From Phaeosaccion multiseriatum (lineage: Eukaryota; Protista; Ochrophyta, other classes): DNA of 64,000 bases. The position numbers and the translations under genes were made by a program. Location: positions 2,604,001-2,668,000 of the forward strand of contig OZ218962.1 in assembly GCA_965112735.1 (NCBI GenBank), read 5' to 3'. Below, piece after piece: positions 46,948 through 59,847 of the stretch. Each line of letters begins with the position of its first letter. Position 1 is the stretch's first letter. The notes under the pieces are model-generated. The model did no database searches and was not told the origin of the DNA. It saw nothing but the letters and a program-made list of their open reading frames with translations.

Positions 46948-49768
<2,821 letters not shown>

Positions 49769-50267: not shown

Positions 50268-53200
50268 TCACTGGCACGGGACACTCTCAAAGGAACCGAA
50301 GCCGCAGAATCTGAAGAGCGCCGTGGGGGGGGAGAGGGTGAGGCAAGAAAGAGCATGTGATTATTTGTGGTGAGAAGGAGTGAAGGGTCTCTCGTTACAC
50401 CTACAGGACCCCCTCCCCCCCCTCGCCGATTTCCTTCCTAGTACCATACGCTGAGAAAGCCCCATTAGATCTCACTCACCTACAGCTGACCTCGCCCAGG
50501 GCTCCACAACCGAGGCTGACGTCTCCGTTAATACATCTTGGCTCGGAGTAGCAGGGCTCACCATCACCGCACATCACAGCACAGGCATCGATCCCTTCTC
50601 CATCGCCGGGATGAGAAGAAGGGGTGGCTGAAGTGGGAGTGGGTGGCGTGCTACTGGTGGAATAGGGAGTCGTCGGAGTGGGTCCTGATACCGTTGCGCC
50701 GCATGGAATGCTGGAAAATCTGCCGAAGCCGCAGAATCTTTTGGGGTCAGATACACAGAATGAAAGGGTGGGCGAGAGAATGAGAGGGTGGGCGAGAAGG
50801 GGTTGGTTTTACGTACGATGGCGCCTGACACCTGGTACCACACGCATAGAAAGCTACACCATCACCCACCTAAGTCCCAACTGTCAGGCTTTCACTTGCT
50901 CATCTCGTTAGCTTACATTATATTTCGTAGTGCTTTTTTCAAATTCATACTACAAAGAGTTAGCAAAGAGTTTCACATTCACACATAGGCTCTCACCTGC
51001 ACAATTTGATCCCCAGGGCGCCACAACCGATGCTGGCCCCGCCCACGCTGGCCCCCAGCCCACACTTTCAGAAGTGAAATGCAGAGTGCGAAACAACAAG
51101 GCAGGGCGGGGAGAGGGGGGCGGGGGGTTAGTGAGATCCGCAAAGAACCGCTGAACGATGGAGTACAAGGCCCCCACTCTGTAATTCATTGGCATATCCT
51201 CCCCTTACGCACGCACGCACACACACACACACACACACACCTTAGGTTCCTGGTAACACGGCTCATCAGTGAGGCAAAGGATGCTACATTCATCCTCCCC
51301 TACTTGTTCAGGCGCCTCTGTCTCATCAGCACTGGATGAAGACGCAGGAGGGGAGACCGACTGAGAAGGATTAGCGCCCGTTTGTAGAGCTGCTGCCGGA
51401 GCAGCTGTCGGAGCAGCTGTCGGAGCAGCTGTAGGTTCTGACGTGGGGGCTGGCGTCTGCCCCGGGCAAACCACCTGTACATACAAACATCGCCACGAGG
51501 TTGGGCAAGCGACGCAGGTAGGGAGGAGGGAATGCAGTGTTGGAAACCGTCGACGAGAGAATGACGCTAGGGCCAGAGAGTGGGGCCAGCGCCTTGGCAG
51601 AGAGAACATACTGCGGTCGTGTCTGTGACAAACGACACCATACCACACTGTACCTGGCTGTAGTCCTCGTTTAGGGCAGTTCGGGGCCCTATGCCGCCCA
51701 CCACGTTGGTGACGGCCATGATGCCGTTGTCCGAGTGAGTCAGCACGTGGCAGTGGTAGAGCACCGTGCCGCTGAAGTCGTGAGGTGACTGACGGACGAC
51801 ACCGCCGCCGTCAGCAGCGATGGTGTCAATCCTTGTGTGTGTGCGTGCGTGTGGGCGGGTGGGTGGGGCAGAGGTGGCGTGTGTTCAAGAACGGAAACGC
51901 AGCAGGGTAGGCAATTGAATGAGTCAGCGCATGTGTTAGAGCGGGTGGTGTTGTGACTGTAAGTCACAACTGTCGGGCAACTGAATGGAGGAAGAGCACG
52001 ACAAGCGGAAAGTAGAGGCTCTTCACTCACCAGTCTCCGGGCTGGTGCCAGTCCTGCAGGGCCAGCACAGGCGTGTTCACATCCACCACCTGCAGAGTGA
52101 GGCAGACGGGGAAGCAGAAAAGCAAAGCGTGGTAGAGTGAGGCGAGGGTACACCGGTCAAGACTCATCCTCCTTCCTTCACCACCCTCCTCCGTGGCTCG
52201 ACTGACCTGGAAGTGGTTGACGTGCCCGTGGAAAGGGTGCATCGCGGAGCCTTGGATGATGAGCTCGTAGACTTCGTCAGCCTCCCAGCTGCGCAGAGGG
52301 TTGGCGTACCCGTCAAACAGCTCACCGTTGACACCCTCACGCACCGCCATCGGATACGTCTCATCGACATCCCGTGTGGTCAGATCCTGGAGATAGGGGG
52401 CGCGGCAAGGCTGCCATTCGGGCAGAGCATCCGTTTCTCCGCTGCCCGTGATGGTCAGAGTGGCCACCTTCACCTCCACGTCCTTGGTGGCGGGCTTGAG
52501 CACGACCTCGTACGTCCCCGCCGAGCACGACACCGCCACGTCCACCCGACTGGACGGGGTGAAGAACAGCAGCGTCTCCCCCGCAGTCTTGGGCAGCATC
52601 CTGGGCAGGCTCGACAGGTACACGCCATCCTTGGCCAGCACAGACACTTCGCAGTCGCCGCCCTTGATGGCCACCAGCGCGTTCTCCTCGTGCCCTGCGT
52701 AGAGCAAGCGCAGTTTGGTCCAGCGGCCCGCAATGGCCGAGATGGACTGCGGGGCGGCACCGCCTCCTCCCGGTTGGGCGAGGCAGCCGTTGACGAGGTA
52801 GAAGTCGTCCGTGGTGGACGCATACCAGATCTTGTCCGCGGACGCGAGAGCCACGTCGTTGGTCTCCTCCGGCTTAAACTCCTGCATCATGATGACGTGC
52901 TCCTGCATGTTGCCGTACGCCGCAGGCATGCCGTTGCCCTCGACGTTGGCGTTGTCCTCCACGATGAGCGGCGCCGCAGCTCCTGCCCCCGTCGTCAGAG
53001 ACACCGAGCCGTGGTGGTGCGTGTGGTACCAGAAGGTGCCGCCCGAGTGGTCGCACGGAACCCTGTACAAGTACTGGTACGTCTCCCCGGGGCCAATCTC
53101 GGACCCAGGGAAGTCAGCAGGAGCCTGTGGGACACACATCAGATCCGATATGATCAGTCAGATGGTGCGACTGTGAGGCAGGCAGACGTGCATGCAAAAC

Positions 53201-56200
53201 GCTGACAGACAGACAGACAGACAGGCAGACAGACAGACAGACAGAAAGACAGACAGACAGACAGACAGACACATGGACCGACAAGCGGGAGGCAAACAAA
53301 CGACCATGTCGTGACTCACCACTCCACTGATGTGCAAGCCGTGCGTGTGGATGTTCATGGTCTTGGGGTCCTTGAAGGCGTTGGTTGGGCCTCCGGGGTT
53401 GTCACCCGGGGAAAGCTCGTTCACCACCGTCAGTCGGTAAGTGTTGCATGCCTGGGCAGGGCACAAGCACGGACGGGAGTGGCACATCAGCAAAGGGGGG
53501 CAGGCGGTAGGCAGACGGAGAGACGCCGAGAAGAGACCATTCGAGGCTCTCTTGCCTACCTGCATGCGCATGGTGGGTCCCGGGATGGCGCCGTCGAAGG
53601 TCCTTGTGTTGACGAGTGTCTCAGTCTCGGAGTCGAAGAAGGACGTCTCAACGAAGCGAACGGTACCGCGGTACTCGCCTCTTCTTCTCGTCCACTCCAC
53701 CTCCTGTGTGCGACAAGGCAATCGAATGGGAGACATCAGTGCTGTCTGTGGAGAGAGGGAGAGACAGAGCGAGACCGTACATATGCATCAACTCACCCCG
53801 CTGTCCGCGGAGCACATGTCCGTCGCTCTCTTGCAGTACACACACGTGGGGTCGCCTCCCTCCCCGGGGCACTGCGCCACTGGCGTGCTGTCCCATCTCT
53901 CGCACACGCCCAAGTCGCTGGCCACGGTCGGAGGAGGGGTGGGAGCGGGAACGACGGGAGCCGGCGTGGGGGCTGAAGTGGCGGCCTCGCTTGCGTTGCC
54001 CACCCCACGTAGGCGGTACAAAGTACCGAAGCCGTAGTCGTATATAAACACATTCTGATCCGGGGAGGGTGGAGGGTTATGGTGAGGATGGGTAGGTGAG
54101 ACTCTGGCGCGTGGGGAAGGGAGGAGGTACAGCGCCAGGGAGGCGGCTAGGCTTCTGACTATTTGGACTTACGCCGGTGTAAGGGTCAGCAAAGATGTCT
54201 GTCCCACCAACATTGCTTGACAAGATCCGAGGGGTGGAGAAGTCGATGGAACCGTCGGCGTTGTTGTCGAAGTAGAAGGTGCAGTGCTTGGTCTACCGGT
54301 GGGGTGGAAGGTATTGGGTCACATGCCATGCCCATGCACGCACACATACGCACAAAAGAGGGACGGAACGAAATGAGCGAGTCGACGGATTGTGATATAT
54401 ATATACAATGGCGTAGACAGAAGAGCGGCTGACCGAAGAGGGAGGGAGAGACGGAGGGAGGAAGTTCGACTGCCGCAAAGCTCTGCTCCCTCGGTCTTTG
54501 CGTTGTCTCAAATGGTCACATCCTTAGTCAGTCTAGTCAACAGCAGCTCGAGCAATCGATCAACCGAACACCACCCTGCCTGACACACACTCACGCAGGC
54601 ACGATCGAACTATGACTACAGTTTGATGAGTCTGACCTGGTCTGCGAAGAAGAGCTTGTTGCGGAGGTGTAGAGGCAGCGCGCTGTTGGCCTCGGAGGAG
54701 TAGTACAGTGAAGTAATCGAAGCCCCACTGGACATACACAGGTCTACACCGGGAGATAGGGCGAGAAGGAGAAGAGAATAGAAGGAGAATACGAATAAGA
54801 AAACACGCACGCACGCACACACGCACACGCACCCTCACGCACATACATAAATACATACACACACGTACACCCACCCACACGCACACGCTCCAACCCACAC
54901 ACACGCTCCAACCCACCCACCCGCCAACACACCTACACACCTGGGTACTCAGGATCCATCACGCCTCCTCTGTAGGCGAACTTGGGCGGCGTTGCCGTGC
55001 TGTCGCTGTCGTCGTCGAAAATTTCGTCACACGTGTCGTAATTGTACTGTAGTACAAAGAACGAGAGAGGGAGGGAGGGCAGGAGGGAAGCGAGCCAGAG
55101 AGAGACCAGAGAGAGAGAGAGCGAGAGCGAGAGAGTGAGAGCGAGAGAGTGAGAGAGAGGGCGAGCGAGGGATCAATTGGAGGGAGGAAGGGAGGCAGAG
55201 GAGGGGGAAAGAGGAAAGAGAGAGACGATGAGGGAGAGGTCGGGAGGCGAGTCCGACGAAGTAAGCGCTACAGCACCACGTGACCACCGACTGCTGACCT
55301 ACCCTCTACGCGACAAGTCAACTCACCACAGCGAGGTAGTCCTTCCTCGCCTGCTGCTCGTGGTCGAACCCCTGAGAGAGACAGAGCGGGGAGTGGCCAT
55401 GTAACCGTCAAGGCATGTAACCGTTAGGGGGAGAGCAAGGTGGGAATCACGGGCGGGCGCTTCGGAAGGTTGCGGTGGGCGGGGTGGAGGGGGAGAAAGA
55501 GGCAGAGAGAGGAGGGCAGAGGGGCATCGATAGGACATTGACCACGAGGAGAGAGGTGGATACAGCGAGACTTCTTTGCCAACTACTTCAGCGGGCTTTA
55601 GGCCCCTCACCTCCCGGCACGGCCATCCAAAGTTGGGCACGTCTCTCCGGGGGCCGCCGACAGTGGGGTTGGGCAGTGAATTGATCTCCTCCGCCGTCCC
55701 GTAGCCTGCGAGGGCCGTGGAGGCAAGCAGGAGCAGCAGTTGGTGATACGGCAGCAGGTGAGTGGACGTCGCCAAGCAAGCACTAGCGGTTGTATCCCAG
55801 ACTCTTTGCCTTCTCCGCCAGGAGGAATGACCTGAGACTCCACCCCAACCCCCCCACCCCCCCCACCCATCCTTCCTCGAGCCACATGCCCTTTCACCCT
55901 TCCCCGCTCGGTCTTCAGTACGCGTACGTACCAACGTCACCAATGAGCACGGTGCCGTCGGGCCCGAGGGCAAGTCGGAATGGGTTTCTGAGTCCGGATG
56001 CGGCCAAGGTCAGGTCCTCCACACCCAGCTCGCGATGTAGCGTCAAGGACTCCGGTGGGATGACCCACGCCTTGCCTGCCAGCGACGTCTTGTGAAGAGT
56101 GAGGGTTGAGGGGTGAGGGGTGAGAGTCAGGGACAGGGAAAGCTTAGGGTCAGGGTCAGGGTAGGCATCAGAACCAGGGTCAGGGATGTAGAGAGCTATG

Positions 56201-59200
56201 GGTCAGGACGTGACGCCTGCATGGCAGAGCAGAGCGTCTGACAAGGCAAGCGACCCCCTCCCCCTCCCCACACACACCACACAGCCTATCCTACTCATCC
56301 CCACACACACCACACAGCCTATCCTACTCACCCCCACACACACCACACAGCCTATCCTACTCACCCCCACACACACCACACAGCCTATCCTACTCACCCC
56401 CACACACACCACACAGCCTATCCTACTCATCCCCACACACACCACACAGCCTATCCTACTCACCCCCACACACACCACACAGCCTATCCTACTCATCCCC
56501 ACACACACCACACAGCCTATCCTACTCACCCCCACACACACCACACAGCCTATCCTACTCACCCCCACACACACCACACAGCCTATCCTACTCACCCCCA
56601 CACACACCACACAGCCTATCCTACTCCTCCCCACACACACCACACAGCCTATCCTACTCACCCCCACACACACCACACAGCCTATCCTACTCACCCCCAC
56701 ACACACCACACAGCCTATCCTACTCACCCCCACACACACCACACAGCCTATCCTACTCATCCCCACACACACCACACAGCCTATCCTACTCCTCCCCACA
56801 CACACCACACAGCCTATCCTACTCACCCCCACACACACCACACAGCCTATCCTACTCATCCCCACACACACCACACAGCCTATCCTACTCACCCCCACAC
56901 ACACCACACAGCCTATCCTACTCCTCCCCACACACACCACACAGCCTATCCTACTCACCCCCACACACACCACACAGCCTATCCTACTCACCCCCACACA
57001 CACCACACAGCCTATCCTACTCACCCCCACACACACCACACAGCCTATCCTACTCACCCCCACACACACCACACAGCCTATCCTACTCACCCCCACACAC
57101 ACCACACAGCCTATCCTACTCCTCCCCACACACACCACACAGCCTATCCTACTCACCGGCTCAAGGGCGAGGAAGGCCCCTCTCGGCATGGGAAAGGCGC
57201 TGTTGGGCATCTCCTGTGCCATCGAGGGAAGAAGGAAGCAGCACAAGAGGGCAAGCAGCAGCGGCGGTAAATGAGCACATGTGTTGAGGGGGTAGGGCAA
57301 GCAGCAGCGGCGGTAAACGAGCACATGTGTTGAGGGGGTATGTAACCGCATAGGCCAGCGCACAGGAGTGCGGAAAGGGAGAGAAGGCGGGAGAGAGAGA
57401 CAGAAACAGAAAGAGAAGGAATGTGAGGGGTGCGTACTGGAGTGGTCCCAGGGGTCCAGCATCCTCCCCTCCTCCTCCTCCTCCTCCTCCTCCTCCTCCC
57501 CCTCCTCCTCCTCCTCCTCCCCACCACGTCCTCCTCCTCCCCACCACGTCCTCCTCCTCCTCCTCCTCCCCTCCCCTCCTCCTCCTCCTCCTCACCCTCC
57601 TCCTCCATCACACTCCCCCTCTTCCTCCTCCCCAACCCCTCCCCCGCCTTTACCTACCAAGCTGCACTCGTCGGGCTGGTTGCGCATGTCCACACCGGGG
57701 TCGTTAGCGTTGGCTTTGGCGGCGTCTCCGTGGGTGAAGAGCAGGCCGCCGTCGGGCAGGAAGCGGAGATCTCCGGGCCCGTGCGAAGAGGAGGTGCTAC
57801 AGAAGCCGTTGAGTAGCACTTGTAGGTCCTCCTCACCACTGTTTATGGCGAACAGAGCAATAATAGTAATTAAGAAATCAAAAATAATATTACGTAGTAA
57901 TAATACAATGGATCGGGTGAAAGGAGAGGAGTGGGAGAGAGAAGGAAGAGAAAGGGAAACGCTGGATGAATGGATCTGAAACTGAAAAAGAGCCAGGGAA
58001 GCTTTCATCCATCACTGTCCTCTCACCTGGAAGAGAAGCTGTCGTTCTCTGCGTCATATTCCACAGTGGCCCGAACGAGCTTGGAGTATTTCTTGCAGTC
58101 GAAGCCCCAGTTTGTCGCCTGCGTTTTATGTGTATCGCACGTTGATGTGATGTTCATTGGTCGAGGAGGGAAGGGAGTGAGTTGAGAGAGTGAGCCTACG
58201 GCGTCTACGGGCATACCCGACCACAAACAACGCACGCACGCACACGCCCACACCCACATTACCTTGATGGTTGGGCAAATGTCCTCCGTCTCGTAGAGTC
58301 TCTGCTCCTCCTGCGAAGCCTCGTCCCACCACGTAGGTGTGCCCGGTTGCTGCCAGTGGAGGTGTGCATACGTACGTAAGGGCAGAGGGCGTTGAGACGA
58401 GACGTCGCAGTGTGAGTCGAGGGGAGGGCAGCGGCAGGAGTAAAAGGTGCATGAGTTGCTCATGGCCCGGAGGAGGGAGCTACGAGAGAGAGAGAGAGAG
58501 AGAGAGAGAAGGAGGGAGCTTGTAACAAAATATGAAATATACGCTTTCGCTGCCCACCTTGGCGGAGTAGATGGTGTATACATACGGCTCGTCGGGCCAG
58601 TCTGGGTGGATGGCAACTGATGTGAGGCCGTGGTCGCTCTTGTCCACCATCGAATACACGTCATTCTGTAGAGGAGGGGGGGTGGGGGGGGGTGGCAGGA
58701 GGAAAAAGCTCGTCAAGTCAGTGAAAATGCATAGCAGGAGCAAGAGCATGAGCAGGGACAGGAGTGCAGGGGCAGTGAAGGCGAGATTTTCTTCATTCTG
58801 GAGTCTGCCCACCCTCGAGAGAAGAGATTAAAATGGCTTGGGGTGGTCCTCATTTCTTCTGACACTCAATCTCTCCTCTCCTCCAGTTCATTAACTACCA
58901 CCACATACTCCCTCAAAGCATCAACCGACGCACAAATTCACAGGACAGGAGACCACGATTCACAAACGCACACGTTCACCACGACGCACAGGCACACACA
59001 CTCAAGAGCACAGGTACGTACCGAGAGGTCCAGCACGACTTGGGCACCCCCCACCCCATCGGAGGCTTCGCGGGGCAGAGAGTCAATGTCAGGAAACACC
59101 TCCAGAACTCCTCCTCGGTAGGCGACCAAGATGGCAGATCCACTGTGGGCAGATTGGGGATTAAGTGGTGCACGGGGGTGGGAGATGGGGGACAGAGAAA

Positions 59201-59847
59201 GGGCGGGGGGATGTGACGATAAAAGGGGCAGGCAGGAGAGAAAGAATAGGTGAAGTGTGAGAGAGAAGGAGGGAGACGTGAGCGAGGAGGGCTATATATA
59301 TGTATGTGGAGAGCGAGAGAGAGAGAGACAGTGAATGGCCGATAGGTGCCGCTCGATGAGGCAGGGTTCGTGACTCGCATTCAGCAGGTAACACGACGCG
59401 GGTGCCAGCACGGATGCGTCGCTGGAAAGGGCAACCACCACCACCACCACCACCAACTACTGCTCCTCTCGTACCTGTACTGGCTTGATCGTGGGAAGAA
59501 GACCGTCTTTATGGCGTTAGAATGCCTTCTCAATGTCGCTTGGAGGTCCATCTGTTTGGTGATGGAAGCATCGCCAGCACGAAATAAATAATCAATTCAC
59601 GAAGATTACAATTAGGGAATGGGTGAGGAGGGTGAGGAGGCGTGTATCTGTGAAGGGAGGCCTGGAGAGGGTGGGACGGTGAGAAAATTAAAAGTGCAAG
59701 GAAGGTGAGCGAAGGGAGAAGACTTACCTGGAGTTGTGCATCCACAAGTTCAGGGATTAGTTGACCATGCGCCCCTCGCAGAAGGAGCCCAAGAGCCACA
59801 CTGCCACAAGCAGCAGCGGGTATGGCGCCTCTCATCGGTGAGAGCAT
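50268..59847 (-). CDS. Secreted fusion: signal peptide, glucose/sorbosone dehydrogenase-like (GSDH) beta-propeller, Pro/Thr linker, three-domain multicopper oxidase, 2 Cys-rich modules; >20 exons
   Basis: GSDH motifs: DHGLTSVAIHPDW..YVYTIY, SHGPGDLRFLPDGGLLFTHGD, LAGKAW, SGLRNPFR, LIGDVG.GTAEEIN, NFGWPCRE, LFFAD. MCO motifs: IPGPT, NIHTHGLH, GTFWYHTHHHG, HPFHGHVNHFQ, LYHCHVLTHSDNGIM. Ends ...RFCGFGSFESVPCQ* (TGA at 50268-50270). I found no stop between the domains in the spliced frame. Confidence 0.8.
56267..57156. repeat. Intronic 33-bp minisatellite, ~27 copies
   Basis: Unit cacacacaccacacagcctatcctactca(c/t)ccc; it explains the spurious PTHTTQPILLT and SRIGCVVCVGV ORFs. Confidence 0.95.

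Follow-up and report, generated by a model that had tools for sequence, protein, structure and literature searches.

We show here that a 64,000-nucleotide stretch of the Phaeosaccion multiseriatum genome (GenBank assembly GCA_965112735.1, contig OZ218962.1, positions 2,604,001 to 2,668,000; the whole stretch is called the window below, and coordinates count from its first letter) carries on its minus strand a single intact nuclear gene of a photosynthetic stramenopile, of the brown/yellow-green group or near it, and that the product of this gene enters the secretory pathway. From N- to C-terminus the 1259-amino-acid product has a signal peptide, a propeller of the type found in the GSDH family and in soluble glucose dehydrogenase (sGDH), a linker rich in Pro, Thr and Cys, a three-domain multicopper oxidase (MCO), and two modules of eight cysteines each. 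Comparison with relatives confirms, as far as sequence can, that one gene encodes both halves in one chain, and the architecture is shown to be conserved in a family that spans Phaeophyceae, Xanthophyceae and Chrysoparadoxa. An earlier note, made from the letters of the window, had described one secreted chain with a propeller, a complete oxidase and no R-x-R pair for binding pyrroloquinoline quinone (PQQ), and had suggested that the chain might carry electrons from sugars to O2; the structural part of that description stands, and the functional part is weighed below.

A 24-exon gene for a secreted two-part protein

The gene model was made with a homologue-guided spliced protein-to-genome aligner of our own writing and a family profile built from homologues, and every boundary was checked by eye. 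It runs from an ATG at 59847 to a last codon (Gln, 50273-50271) and a TGA at 50270-50268, so that it begins and stops at exactly the gene limits given in the earlier note, and it consists of 24 exons with a GT donor and an AG acceptor at every intron and a single open frame of 1259 codons. Homologous proteins align colinearly along the entire gene, and two tiny exons of 45 nt (55371-55327) and 57 nt (57213-57157) are both backed by homology. Because all 24 exons are in frame and homology-supported, the arrangement cannot have arisen by chance. The surrounding DNA is eukaryotic and rich in introns. The signal peptide, propeller motifs and four copper motifs that had been placed in one frame by hand were all recovered in this model.

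Exon 1 (59728..59847, residues 1-40, beginning with the first ATG of the frame and ending in the donor cagGTAAGT; all exons are on the minus strand) encodes the start codon and a signal-peptide-like segment of about residues 1-28, with a hydrophobic core at residues 7-22 and predicted cleavage after AHG at residue 28. Homologue P0001 has AWG/QL at the equivalent position, an AxG/QL cleavage context that is common to both proteins. The propeller extends to about residue 515 and is followed by a Pro/Thr linker and five-Cys stretch (516-582), the MCO (583 to about 1046), and a C-terminus in which a Pro/Thr linker followed by an 8-Cys module occurs twice. These repeats are spread over exon 21 (51241..51474, residues 1060-1137, Pro/Thr linker and Cys 1-3 of module 1, where Pfam gave only a PT repeat at E 0.006), exon 22 (50997..51064, residues 1138-1160, Cys 4-6 of module 1, located by alignment of module 2 to this region), exon 23 (50480..50737, residues 1160-1246, Cys 7-8 of module 1, a Pro/Thr linker and Cys 1-6 of module 2, with no Pfam family) and exon 24 (50268..50310, Cys 7-8 of module 2 and the stop codon, from the spliced alignment). 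In the Pfam scan no family matched the 8-Cys modules or the Cys-rich linker. About 1.1-1.3 kb past the stop codon lie (GTAT)21 and (CA)41 repeats (48963-49163).

The two halves are joined in one gene

The halves meet at intron 15 (53704..53796, 93 nt, phase 0). Exon 15 (53797..54054, residues 497-582), which holds the last propeller strand, the Pro/Thr linker and the 5-Cys stretch, ends at 53797 in the donor GGG/GTGAGT, and the intron closes with a pyrimidine tract and CACAG ahead of the EVEW of exon 16 (53560..53703, residues 583-630, family hidden Markov model (HMM) 27.1 bits), where the MCO starts with EVEWT and GPTMRMQ and where homologues have a conserved PELEW. An alternative acceptor at 53746 would make a 51-nt intron and also keep the frame. 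An HMM-scored junction at 53881/53703 was dropped in favour of the consensus donor at 53797, because the profile has no copy-specific Cys linker.

Two adjacent genes could in principle have been misjoined here, with a propeller gene ending at the in-frame TGA at 53790-53788 (the sole stop within the 93 nt, two codons past the linker-exon donor) and an oxidase gene starting from the in-frame ATG at 53736, 52 nt downstream. However, a terminator and a promoter would not fit into a gap of about 50 nt, no signal peptide would precede the oxidase, and a donor, pyrimidine tract and AG stand where an intron requires them. Paralogue P1 shares this junction, and in the divergent paralogue on contig 15 the two halves lie in different frames, so that they can be joined only through a canonical 131-nt GTACGT..CAG intron at the homologous spot. 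Transcripts and uninterrupted open reading frames (ORFs) of relatives cross the junction, the block homogenised among the tandem paralogues (below) begins upstream of it, and the best relatives of both halves are the same, namely brown algae. We therefore regard two genes as extremely improbable, and the joining of propeller and oxidase in one chain, as the earlier note had it, is upheld. This decision rests on relatives because only DNA runs hold the stretch: the 4 runs found, from one sample, are all DNA and none is an RNA run for the organism. They contain about 90% of the words of the stretch, introns included, their contigs over 51600-56200 cover introns, and the few "joints" in them fall in simple repeats, none matching a predicted intron. 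Retention of the junction intron could, through its TGA, give a propeller-only isoform.

The oxidase half is a complete multicopper oxidase

The oxidase half is shown to be a three-domain MCO like CueO and Thermus laccase. Exon 18 (52207..53124, residues 675-980), which carries WYHTHHHG, the middle cupredoxin domain and HPFHGH, scored 27.2 bits for Cu-oxidase_3 (curated cut-off 21) and 20.7 bits for Cu-oxidase_2 (curated cut-off 20.4) in Pfam, profiles for which the earlier note had proposed a HMMER search; homologues score 35-65 bits on the Cu-oxidase profiles. The copper ligands, 10 His and 1 Cys, are complete and fall in conserved family columns that were aligned to the Thermus laccase motifs through a homologue. 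Motif 1, HTHG (His665 and His667, with HTH at 53349-53341), is in exon 17 (53320..53451, residues 631-674); motifs 2 (His708 and His710, HTH 53025-53017) and 3 (His970, His973 and His975, HPFHGH 52239-52222) are in exon 18; and motif 4 (His1026, Cys1027, His1028 and His1032), read as HCHVLTHSDNGIM with HCHVLTH at 51755-51735 against HCHIVEHEDRGMM in Thermus laccase, is in exon 20 (51654..51831, residues 1000-1059). Exon 19 (52031..52089, residues 981-1000) was placed by the spliced alignment. The axial type-1 position is Ile1037 (in HSDNGIM) instead of Met, and relatives have Val, Ile, Leu or Met there; this does not exclude membership of the MCO family, since non-coordinating axial residues are known in fungal laccases.

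The nearest solved oxidases are three-domain enzymes of bacteria, by sequence Thermus laccase (5e-20) and CueO. Structure work used models of the Vaucheria homologue P0009, and in a Foldseek search with its full-length model (predicted local distance difference test, pLDDT, 90.7) the matches to McoC, CueO and Thermus laccase had E values of 1e-30 to 1e-28 and template-modelling scores (TM, by target) of 0.72-0.80, as befits a three-cupredoxin fold. A (GACA)17 repeat lies at 53204-53271, within intron 17.

The propeller half is of the GSDH/sGDH type but lacks the PQQ-carboxylate arginines

The propeller in the window belongs to the six-bladed GSDH/sGDH type. A HMMER search for GSDH had been proposed in the earlier note: a single exon of the window reaches only 17 bits against Pfam GSDH (PF07995; cut-off 25 bits), whereas full-length relatives clear the cut-off (P0235, 47.3; P0009, 41.2; P0166, 37.6; P0006, 35.1 bits). 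In HMMER the propeller-family profile matches sGDH (1c9u) at E 7e-10 and Escherichia coli Asd at 4.5e-9, and hhalign aligns the family with the canonical GSDH domain of the related fusion P0123 with a probability of 96.3%. The AlphaFold2 model of the P0009 propeller (pLDDT 87.6; predicted TM score, pTM, 0.89) gave 18 top Foldseek matches that are all PQQ sugar dehydrogenases, with E values to 8e-17 and TM by target to 0.79; sGDH, 3A9G, Asd and 2ISM are the first structural neighbours, hedgehog-interacting protein (HHIP) is next, and the fungal AA12 enzymes come after.

The motifs that the earlier note had listed as kept (the His of SHG, GD, GLRNP and EEIN) were found in the spliced protein as SSSHGPGD, GLRNPF and AEEIN. 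Exon 7 (57658..57838, residues 207-267, CSTSSSHGPGD..THGD) contains His226 (57783-57781), which is invariant in 23 family sequences and is placed by hhalign on the FHNGG His of P0123; this candidate catalytic residue would be the counterpart of His144 of sGDH and His363 of CcPDH, the pyranose dehydrogenase of Coprinopsis cinerea. Exon 9 (55932..56088, residues 287-339, GLRNPFR and GDVG; family HMM 28.7 bits) contains Arg320 and Asn321 (55989-55984). Arg320 is likewise invariant in the 23 sequences, Asn321 is replaced by Gln or His in some relatives, and the GLRNPF motif aligns to GLRNPW of P0123 in hhalign and weakly matches GHRNPQG of 2ISM. In sGDH (Arg228/Asn229) and CcPDH (Arg430/Asn431) such an Arg-Asn pair binds the PQQ quinone oxygens. 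When a single central propeller exon was compared with the PDB it gave blade-repeat noise and the weak GHRNPQG match only.

The R-x-R pair that the earlier note could not find is indeed missing, with GGTD at 54208-54200 in its place in exon 14 (54173..54292, residues 457-496, TKHCTFYF..NVGGTDIF; profile alignment to 1c9u). An arginine that binds the PQQ carboxylate is conserved from bacteria to fungal AA12 (Arg406 of sGDH, its counterpart in Asd, and Arg621 of CcPDH; PMC6881789), and because it is absent throughout the algal family the binding of PQQ by these propellers is doubtful.

The other propeller exons are exon 2 (59475..59551, residues 41-66, first strand region, acceptor AAACAG and donor cagGTACGA, fitting the family motif "kF.P"), exon 3 (59022..59142, residues 66-106, motif AILVAYRGGVLEVFPDIDS, counterpart VITAHKTGRIRLYQSI in a Vaucheria transcript, from the spliced alignment), exon 4 (58543..58665, residues 107-147, motif DHGLTSVAIHPDW, Pfam GSDH E 0.0038, family HMM 25.5 bits), exons 5 (58263..58349, residues 148-176, donor aagGTAATG) and 6 (58027..58118, residues 177-207, GFDCKKYSKL), both from the spliced alignment, and exon 8, the 57-nt exon (57157..57213, residues 268-286, PRGAFLALEP), which was placed by the spliced alignment and matches PQGAFRAQ of the contig 15 paralogue. 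They continue with exon 10 (55611..55705, residues 339-370, AEEIN and NFGWPCRE(G), spliced and family alignment, donor gagGTGAGG), exon 11, the 45-nt micro-exon (55327..55371, residues 371-385, GFDHEQQARKDYLAV, matching FDSPSEKTRRAYLAE in a Vaucheria transcript and flanked as TCTCAG/.../GTGAGT), exon 12 (54941..55046, residues 386-421, motif FAYRGGVMDPEYP, spliced and family alignment) and exon 13 (54637..54743, residues 421-456, KLFFADQ, spliced alignment).

Intron 8 (56089..57156) was found by repeat analysis to contain a minisatellite (56266-57157) in which a 33-bp unit is repeated 27 times (97% matches, score 1693) and which adjoins the exon 8 donor. Read on the coding strand, every unit opens with GTGAGT and makes up 11 stop-free codons for VSRIGCVVCVG, so that the array offers 27 in-frame consensus donors, each of which would add VSRIGCVVCVG to the protein. 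The genome also has canonical GSDH-family genes that score 66-103 bits in Pfam, far above the fusion-type propellers (contig 11, 576819-577505; contig 15, 1737003-1737632 and 871248-871775; contig 14, 2157062-2157661; contig 9, 1362132-1362800).

Relatives with the same architecture

When exon 18, the large oxidase exon, was used as a phmmer query against the full database, the top matches reached 1e-63, and the best were proteins of 990-1945 residues in which the aligned part begins near residue 640-690. Pfam found GSDH, Cu-oxidase_3 and Cu-oxidase_2 in these relatives, often with a carbohydrate-binding module of family CBM6 or CBM35. Complete transcript ORFs with both halves are available from Vaucheria litorea (MMETSP0945, marked complete; P0009, P0011 and P0163) and Tribonema gayanum (Trinity; P0006, P0016 and P0167), and fusion gene models from Tribonema minus, Chrysoparadoxa australica, Cladosiphon and several Ectocarpus species. 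Three further proteins (P0003, P0002 and P0123) present the fusion as a single uninterrupted ORF (1285, 1750 or 1082 residues) on intron-poor metagenome contigs whose other genes are eukaryotic (Meckelin, COQ9, RPN2).

In other organisms, oxidases of this clade are joined to GH16, to a sulfatase, to CBM1 with TSP3 repeats, or to CBM6 (P0008, P0093, P0017 and P0018), a recurrent link to polysaccharide-active modules.

Tandem copies share an oxidase and differ in the propeller

The genome contains three tandem copies on contig 13, of which the window gene is one; contig 15 has a further complete fusion, contig 1 a gene for the oxidase alone, and an extra propeller fragment is present as well. 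Between the window gene and its two tandem paralogues the oxidase halves are 94-96% identical in protein, with a synonymous divergence (dS) of 0.05-0.06, a ratio of nonsynonymous to synonymous divergence (dN/dS) of 0.38, and introns that are conserved too; the propeller halves are 57% identical, with dS of about 1.5 and dN/dS of 0.25. Both halves are under purifying selection. In blastn comparisons with contig 13, 2669501-2688000, a block at 52010..53974 (minus strand) is 92-94% identical to the two paralogues, introns included; it begins near 53974, within the part of exon 15 that encodes the Pro/Thr linker, similarity resumes at 51398-51833, and a separate short similar tract lies over exon 14. 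Either gene conversion homogenises the oxidase, or recombination has put a different propeller onto an oxidase that the copies share, and under both histories the exchange unit ends at the domain boundary.

The window copy might itself be a silent or decaying duplicate within a real family, a reading that fits with the finding of DNA runs alone for the organism, the three tandem copies and nearby extra propeller fragment, the off-family residues at three conserved propeller positions (below), and the minisatellite with its 27 consensus donors at the end of exon 8. We think this very unlikely, given that 1259 codons are open over 24 exons with intact splice sites, that dN/dS against the paralogues is well below one in propeller and oxidase alike, and that the copper ligands and the His and Arg-Asn motifs are all intact.

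Upstream of the third tandem copy (contig 13, 2688359-2688526, minus strand) there is a fourth propeller exon with the His motif, 66% identical to that of the window; a genome-wide exon search found no oxidase exon to match it, and this exon may represent a remnant or an incomplete duplication. The contig 1 gene (1074688-1077544; L012) encodes an oxidase of the same clade and has no propeller exons upstream, so that the oxidase module also stands alone; it was considered as a fifth fusion and rejected, its upstream "exons" being Pro-rich noise. In the 6-kb head-to-head spacer between the window gene and its paralogue on the other strand sits a microsatellite of about 240 GAGG copies (89% matches), from 63033 to the end of the window at 64000, where it runs off.

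A possible electron relay and its alternatives

The chain could be a relay in which the propeller oxidises carbohydrate and the oxidase passes the electrons to O2. This reading is plausible and agrees with all that was observed, and we give it a chance just short of even. The propeller would be the reductive half, in which a sugar or the end of a polysaccharide would be oxidised at the His/Arg-Asn site with PQQ acquired from bacteria, or a related quinone, as the cofactor. Electrons would then pass one by one to the type-1 copper of the attached oxidase, and its trinuclear centre would turn O2 into water. As a whole the chain would be a carbohydrate:oxygen oxidoreductase that makes water and works in the cell wall or matrix, with the propeller choosing the substrate and the oxidase serving as a constant electron sink.

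We count the relay as supported because the His and Arg are invariant and the copper ligands complete, because fusions of GSDH propellers with electron carriers exist elsewhere (with cytochrome c in P0220, and in CcPDH with cytochrome b; PMC4332668, PMC6881789), because P0123 joins a canonical GSDH domain to an MCO in another eukaryote, and because relatives carry CBM6/CBM35. A dehydrogenase needs an acceptor and an oxidase needs no donor domain, and so the scarcity of lone propellers of this subfamily (a word search gave four matches, two of them fragments), together with the occurrence of lone oxidases, was also counted in its favour, as was the purifying selection on the propeller. The full-length P0009 model has a pTM of 0.82 although its linker (residues 510-530) is of low confidence, which suggests that in the modelled protein the two modules have a defined packing.

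Several observations weigh against the relay. In the HMMER profile alignment with 1c9u the family has Gly/Val facing Arg406 and Arg408 of sGDH (Gly485 and Thr487 in the window), and Thr/Ser facing Lys377, with a Lys one residue on. A profile of the segment from the His motif to the GWPC motif found no PDB match at E 10 in HMMER. The window copy and its two tandem paralogues are altered at three invariant or nearly invariant positions (CEH to CKK, PQG to PRG and FR to FL). Eukaryotes are not known to synthesise PQQ; a search for pqqC (TIGR02111) found no match in this genome, but it was equally silent in the 14 control genomes and so carries no weight. The pTM value comes from a homologue and not from the window protein, the nearest solved oxidases (McoC and CueO) are metal oxidases, the Ectocarpus orthologue is annotated for iron and copper handling, and the runs that hold the stretch are DNA. 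With regard to the cofactor, CcPDH uses PQQ without being able to make it (PMC4332668, PMC6881789, PMC5960967), and PQQ binding is plastic between sGDH and AA12 (PMC6881789).

In the main alternative the oxidase alone would be catalytic, as a cuprous/ferrous or phenol oxidase of the cell surface that handles metals or cross-links wall phenolics, and the propeller would have lost its cofactor and become a binding or positioning module like that of hedgehog-interacting protein. The family-wide absence of the PQQ-binding arginines, the place of HHIP propellers directly after the dehydrogenases among structural neighbours, the metallo-oxidases nearest to the oxidase half, the labelling of the Ectocarpus orthologue as an iron-transport and copper-resistance MCO, and the joining of the same oxidase clade to non-redox carbohydrate modules (GH16, sulfatase, CBM1, CBM6) all point this way. 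A pure binding module would however have no need of the catalytic-type His and the Arg of the RN pair, which are invariant in 23 divergent sequences, the related fusion P0123 retains a fully canonical GSDH domain (96 bits), and the plasticity of PQQ binding cited above applies here too. We consider this alternative unlikely.

Both halves might instead be active and unwired, the oxidase making quinones or radicals from phenolics and the propeller re-reducing them with electrons from sugar, or the reverse. Cycling of this kind has been proposed for fungal laccase with cellobiose or pyranose dehydrogenases; sGDH-type enzymes in general accept quinones well, laccases use phenols, brown and related algae are rich in phenolics, and the linker is long and modelled with low confidence. 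Such a cycle would on the other hand make covalent fusion unnecessary, yet the word search gave hardly any lone propeller, and the pTM of the two-module chain suggests a fixed packing rather than beads on a string. It therefore seems quite unlikely to us.

In glucose/oxygen biofuel cells and biosensors the classic enzymes are soluble PQQ sugar dehydrogenases at the anode and laccase-type oxidases at the cathode. A bolder form of the relay would make the family a one-chain "short-circuited glucose/O2 fuel cell", that is, a quinone-dependent carbohydrate dehydrogenase wired to a laccase-type copper centre. Brown, yellow-green and related algae would then have in their walls a new class of carbohydrate oxidase that forms water and no H2O2, with a reworked quinone pocket that binds bacterial PQQ without the canonical arginines, or else holds a different cofactor, and with tandem copies that diversify the propeller for substrates while gene conversion keeps the shared oxidase. 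We put this forward tentatively, as possible and less probable than not.

Novelty and significance

In full-text literature searching we found no paper on a fusion of a GSDH/PQQ dehydrogenase with an MCO, and in a brown-alga genomics preprint neither multicopper oxidases nor laccases come up. The novelty suggested in the earlier note holds in that respect and is tempered in another, since the architecture has been public since the Ectocarpus genome (CBJ26284.1/D7FVB2), where it went unremarked under an iron/copper MCO label. Each of the two parts is an ordinary member of a well-known family, and the propeller fails one defining feature of PQQ binding; what is new is the tandem copies with diverged propellers on a near-identical oxidase, the switch falling in the linker between the domains.

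If the relay is real, it is a natural covalent dehydrogenase-oxidase pair that shows how evolution couples the two, a carbohydrate oxidase that yields water and not peroxide, and an unrecognised oxidative enzyme in the wall and matrix toolkit of brown algae and their relatives, and the standing iron/copper annotation of the Ectocarpus orthologue would be corrected. The family also raises anew the question from where a eukaryote that cannot synthesise PQQ gets it, or what it uses instead, and the mosaic of the tandem array is a tidy case of module-wise evolution.

Comparison with known systems

For propeller and oxidase alike, the best relatives come from Ectocarpus species and Cladosiphon okamuranus (P0235, P0238 and P0166); they have the same propeller-then-oxidase order in Pfam and are 28-31% identical to the window protein in the propeller and 44-45% in the oxidase. 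The Ectocarpus protein CBJ26284.1 (UniRef100_D7FVB2, P0235, 1175 residues), annotated solely as an MCO for iron transport and copper resistance, has a hydrophobic C-terminal segment, VGIVILLCGGLL, followed by basic residues, and from this tail it is probably membrane-anchored; it also has by eye a PKD-like segment between the halves, where Pfam reported no PKD at E 0.01. The window protein lacks such a tail and anchor and has instead the Cys-rich linker and two 8-Cys modules. The proteins of Vaucheria litorea, Tribonema minus and T. gayanum (for example KAG5188997.1) and Chrysoparadoxa australica (CAM9363120.1 and CAM9301442.1) have a signal peptide, propeller, PELEW linker and three-domain MCO, and share the His, the Arg and the copper ligands with the window protein. 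They differ from it in that many carry a C-terminal CBM6/CBM35 where it has the 8-Cys modules, their GFGD..TSERIF loop is longer, and their type-1 axial ligand varies among Met, Ile, Val and Leu.

P0123 (JGI metagenome 3300003878, L022:4846-8094), from an intron-poor host whose contig also encodes the eukaryotic RPN2 and zf-UBP, has the same domain order with a PKD spacer (GSDH-PKD-MCO), and its oxidase is 35% identical to that of the window over the best stretches; its GSDH domain, by contrast, is canonical, with arginines near the PQQ-carboxylate positions. In P0220, a cytochrome c-GSDH protein known only from Logan-assembled contigs, a GSDH propeller is joined to another electron carrier.

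CueO of E. coli, the Thermus thermophilus laccase (2XU9) and Campylobacter McoC (3ZX1) have the three cupredoxin domains and four copper motifs in common with the window oxidase at about 16-21% identity, whereas the window oxidase has Ile for the axial Met, no methionine-rich lid that we could recognise, and an attached propeller. Similarly, sGDH of Acinetobacter calcoaceticus (1C9U/1CQ1) and Asd/YliI of E. coli (2G8S), which come first among the neighbours of the propeller in structure and in sequence, share its six-bladed fold and its His, GxRNP, DEIN-like and GWP motifs at just 13-15% identity; the algal propeller is without counterparts of Arg406, Arg408 and Lys377, has extra Cys-rich insertions, and is fused to an oxidase where the bacterial enzymes use a free acceptor. 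The AA12 structures (6I1T and 6JT5), with 9% identity, come behind HHIP as well as behind the bacterial enzymes, and were not matched by the sequence profile.

The design nonetheless resembles that of CcPDH (AA8-AA12-CBM1), a secreted eukaryotic six-bladed PQQ sugar dehydrogenase with an electron-accepting domain and a carbohydrate-binding module, and that of cellobiose dehydrogenase. No AA8 or cytochrome domain was found in Pfam scans of the window exons or the relatives, and the likeness to these two enzymes, drawn from domain arrangement, is one of design by analogy and not of membership. In CcPDH the acceptor is a haem b domain that hands electrons on to lytic polysaccharide monooxygenases, whereas in the window protein it would be a four-copper oxidase, which could end the chain at O2.

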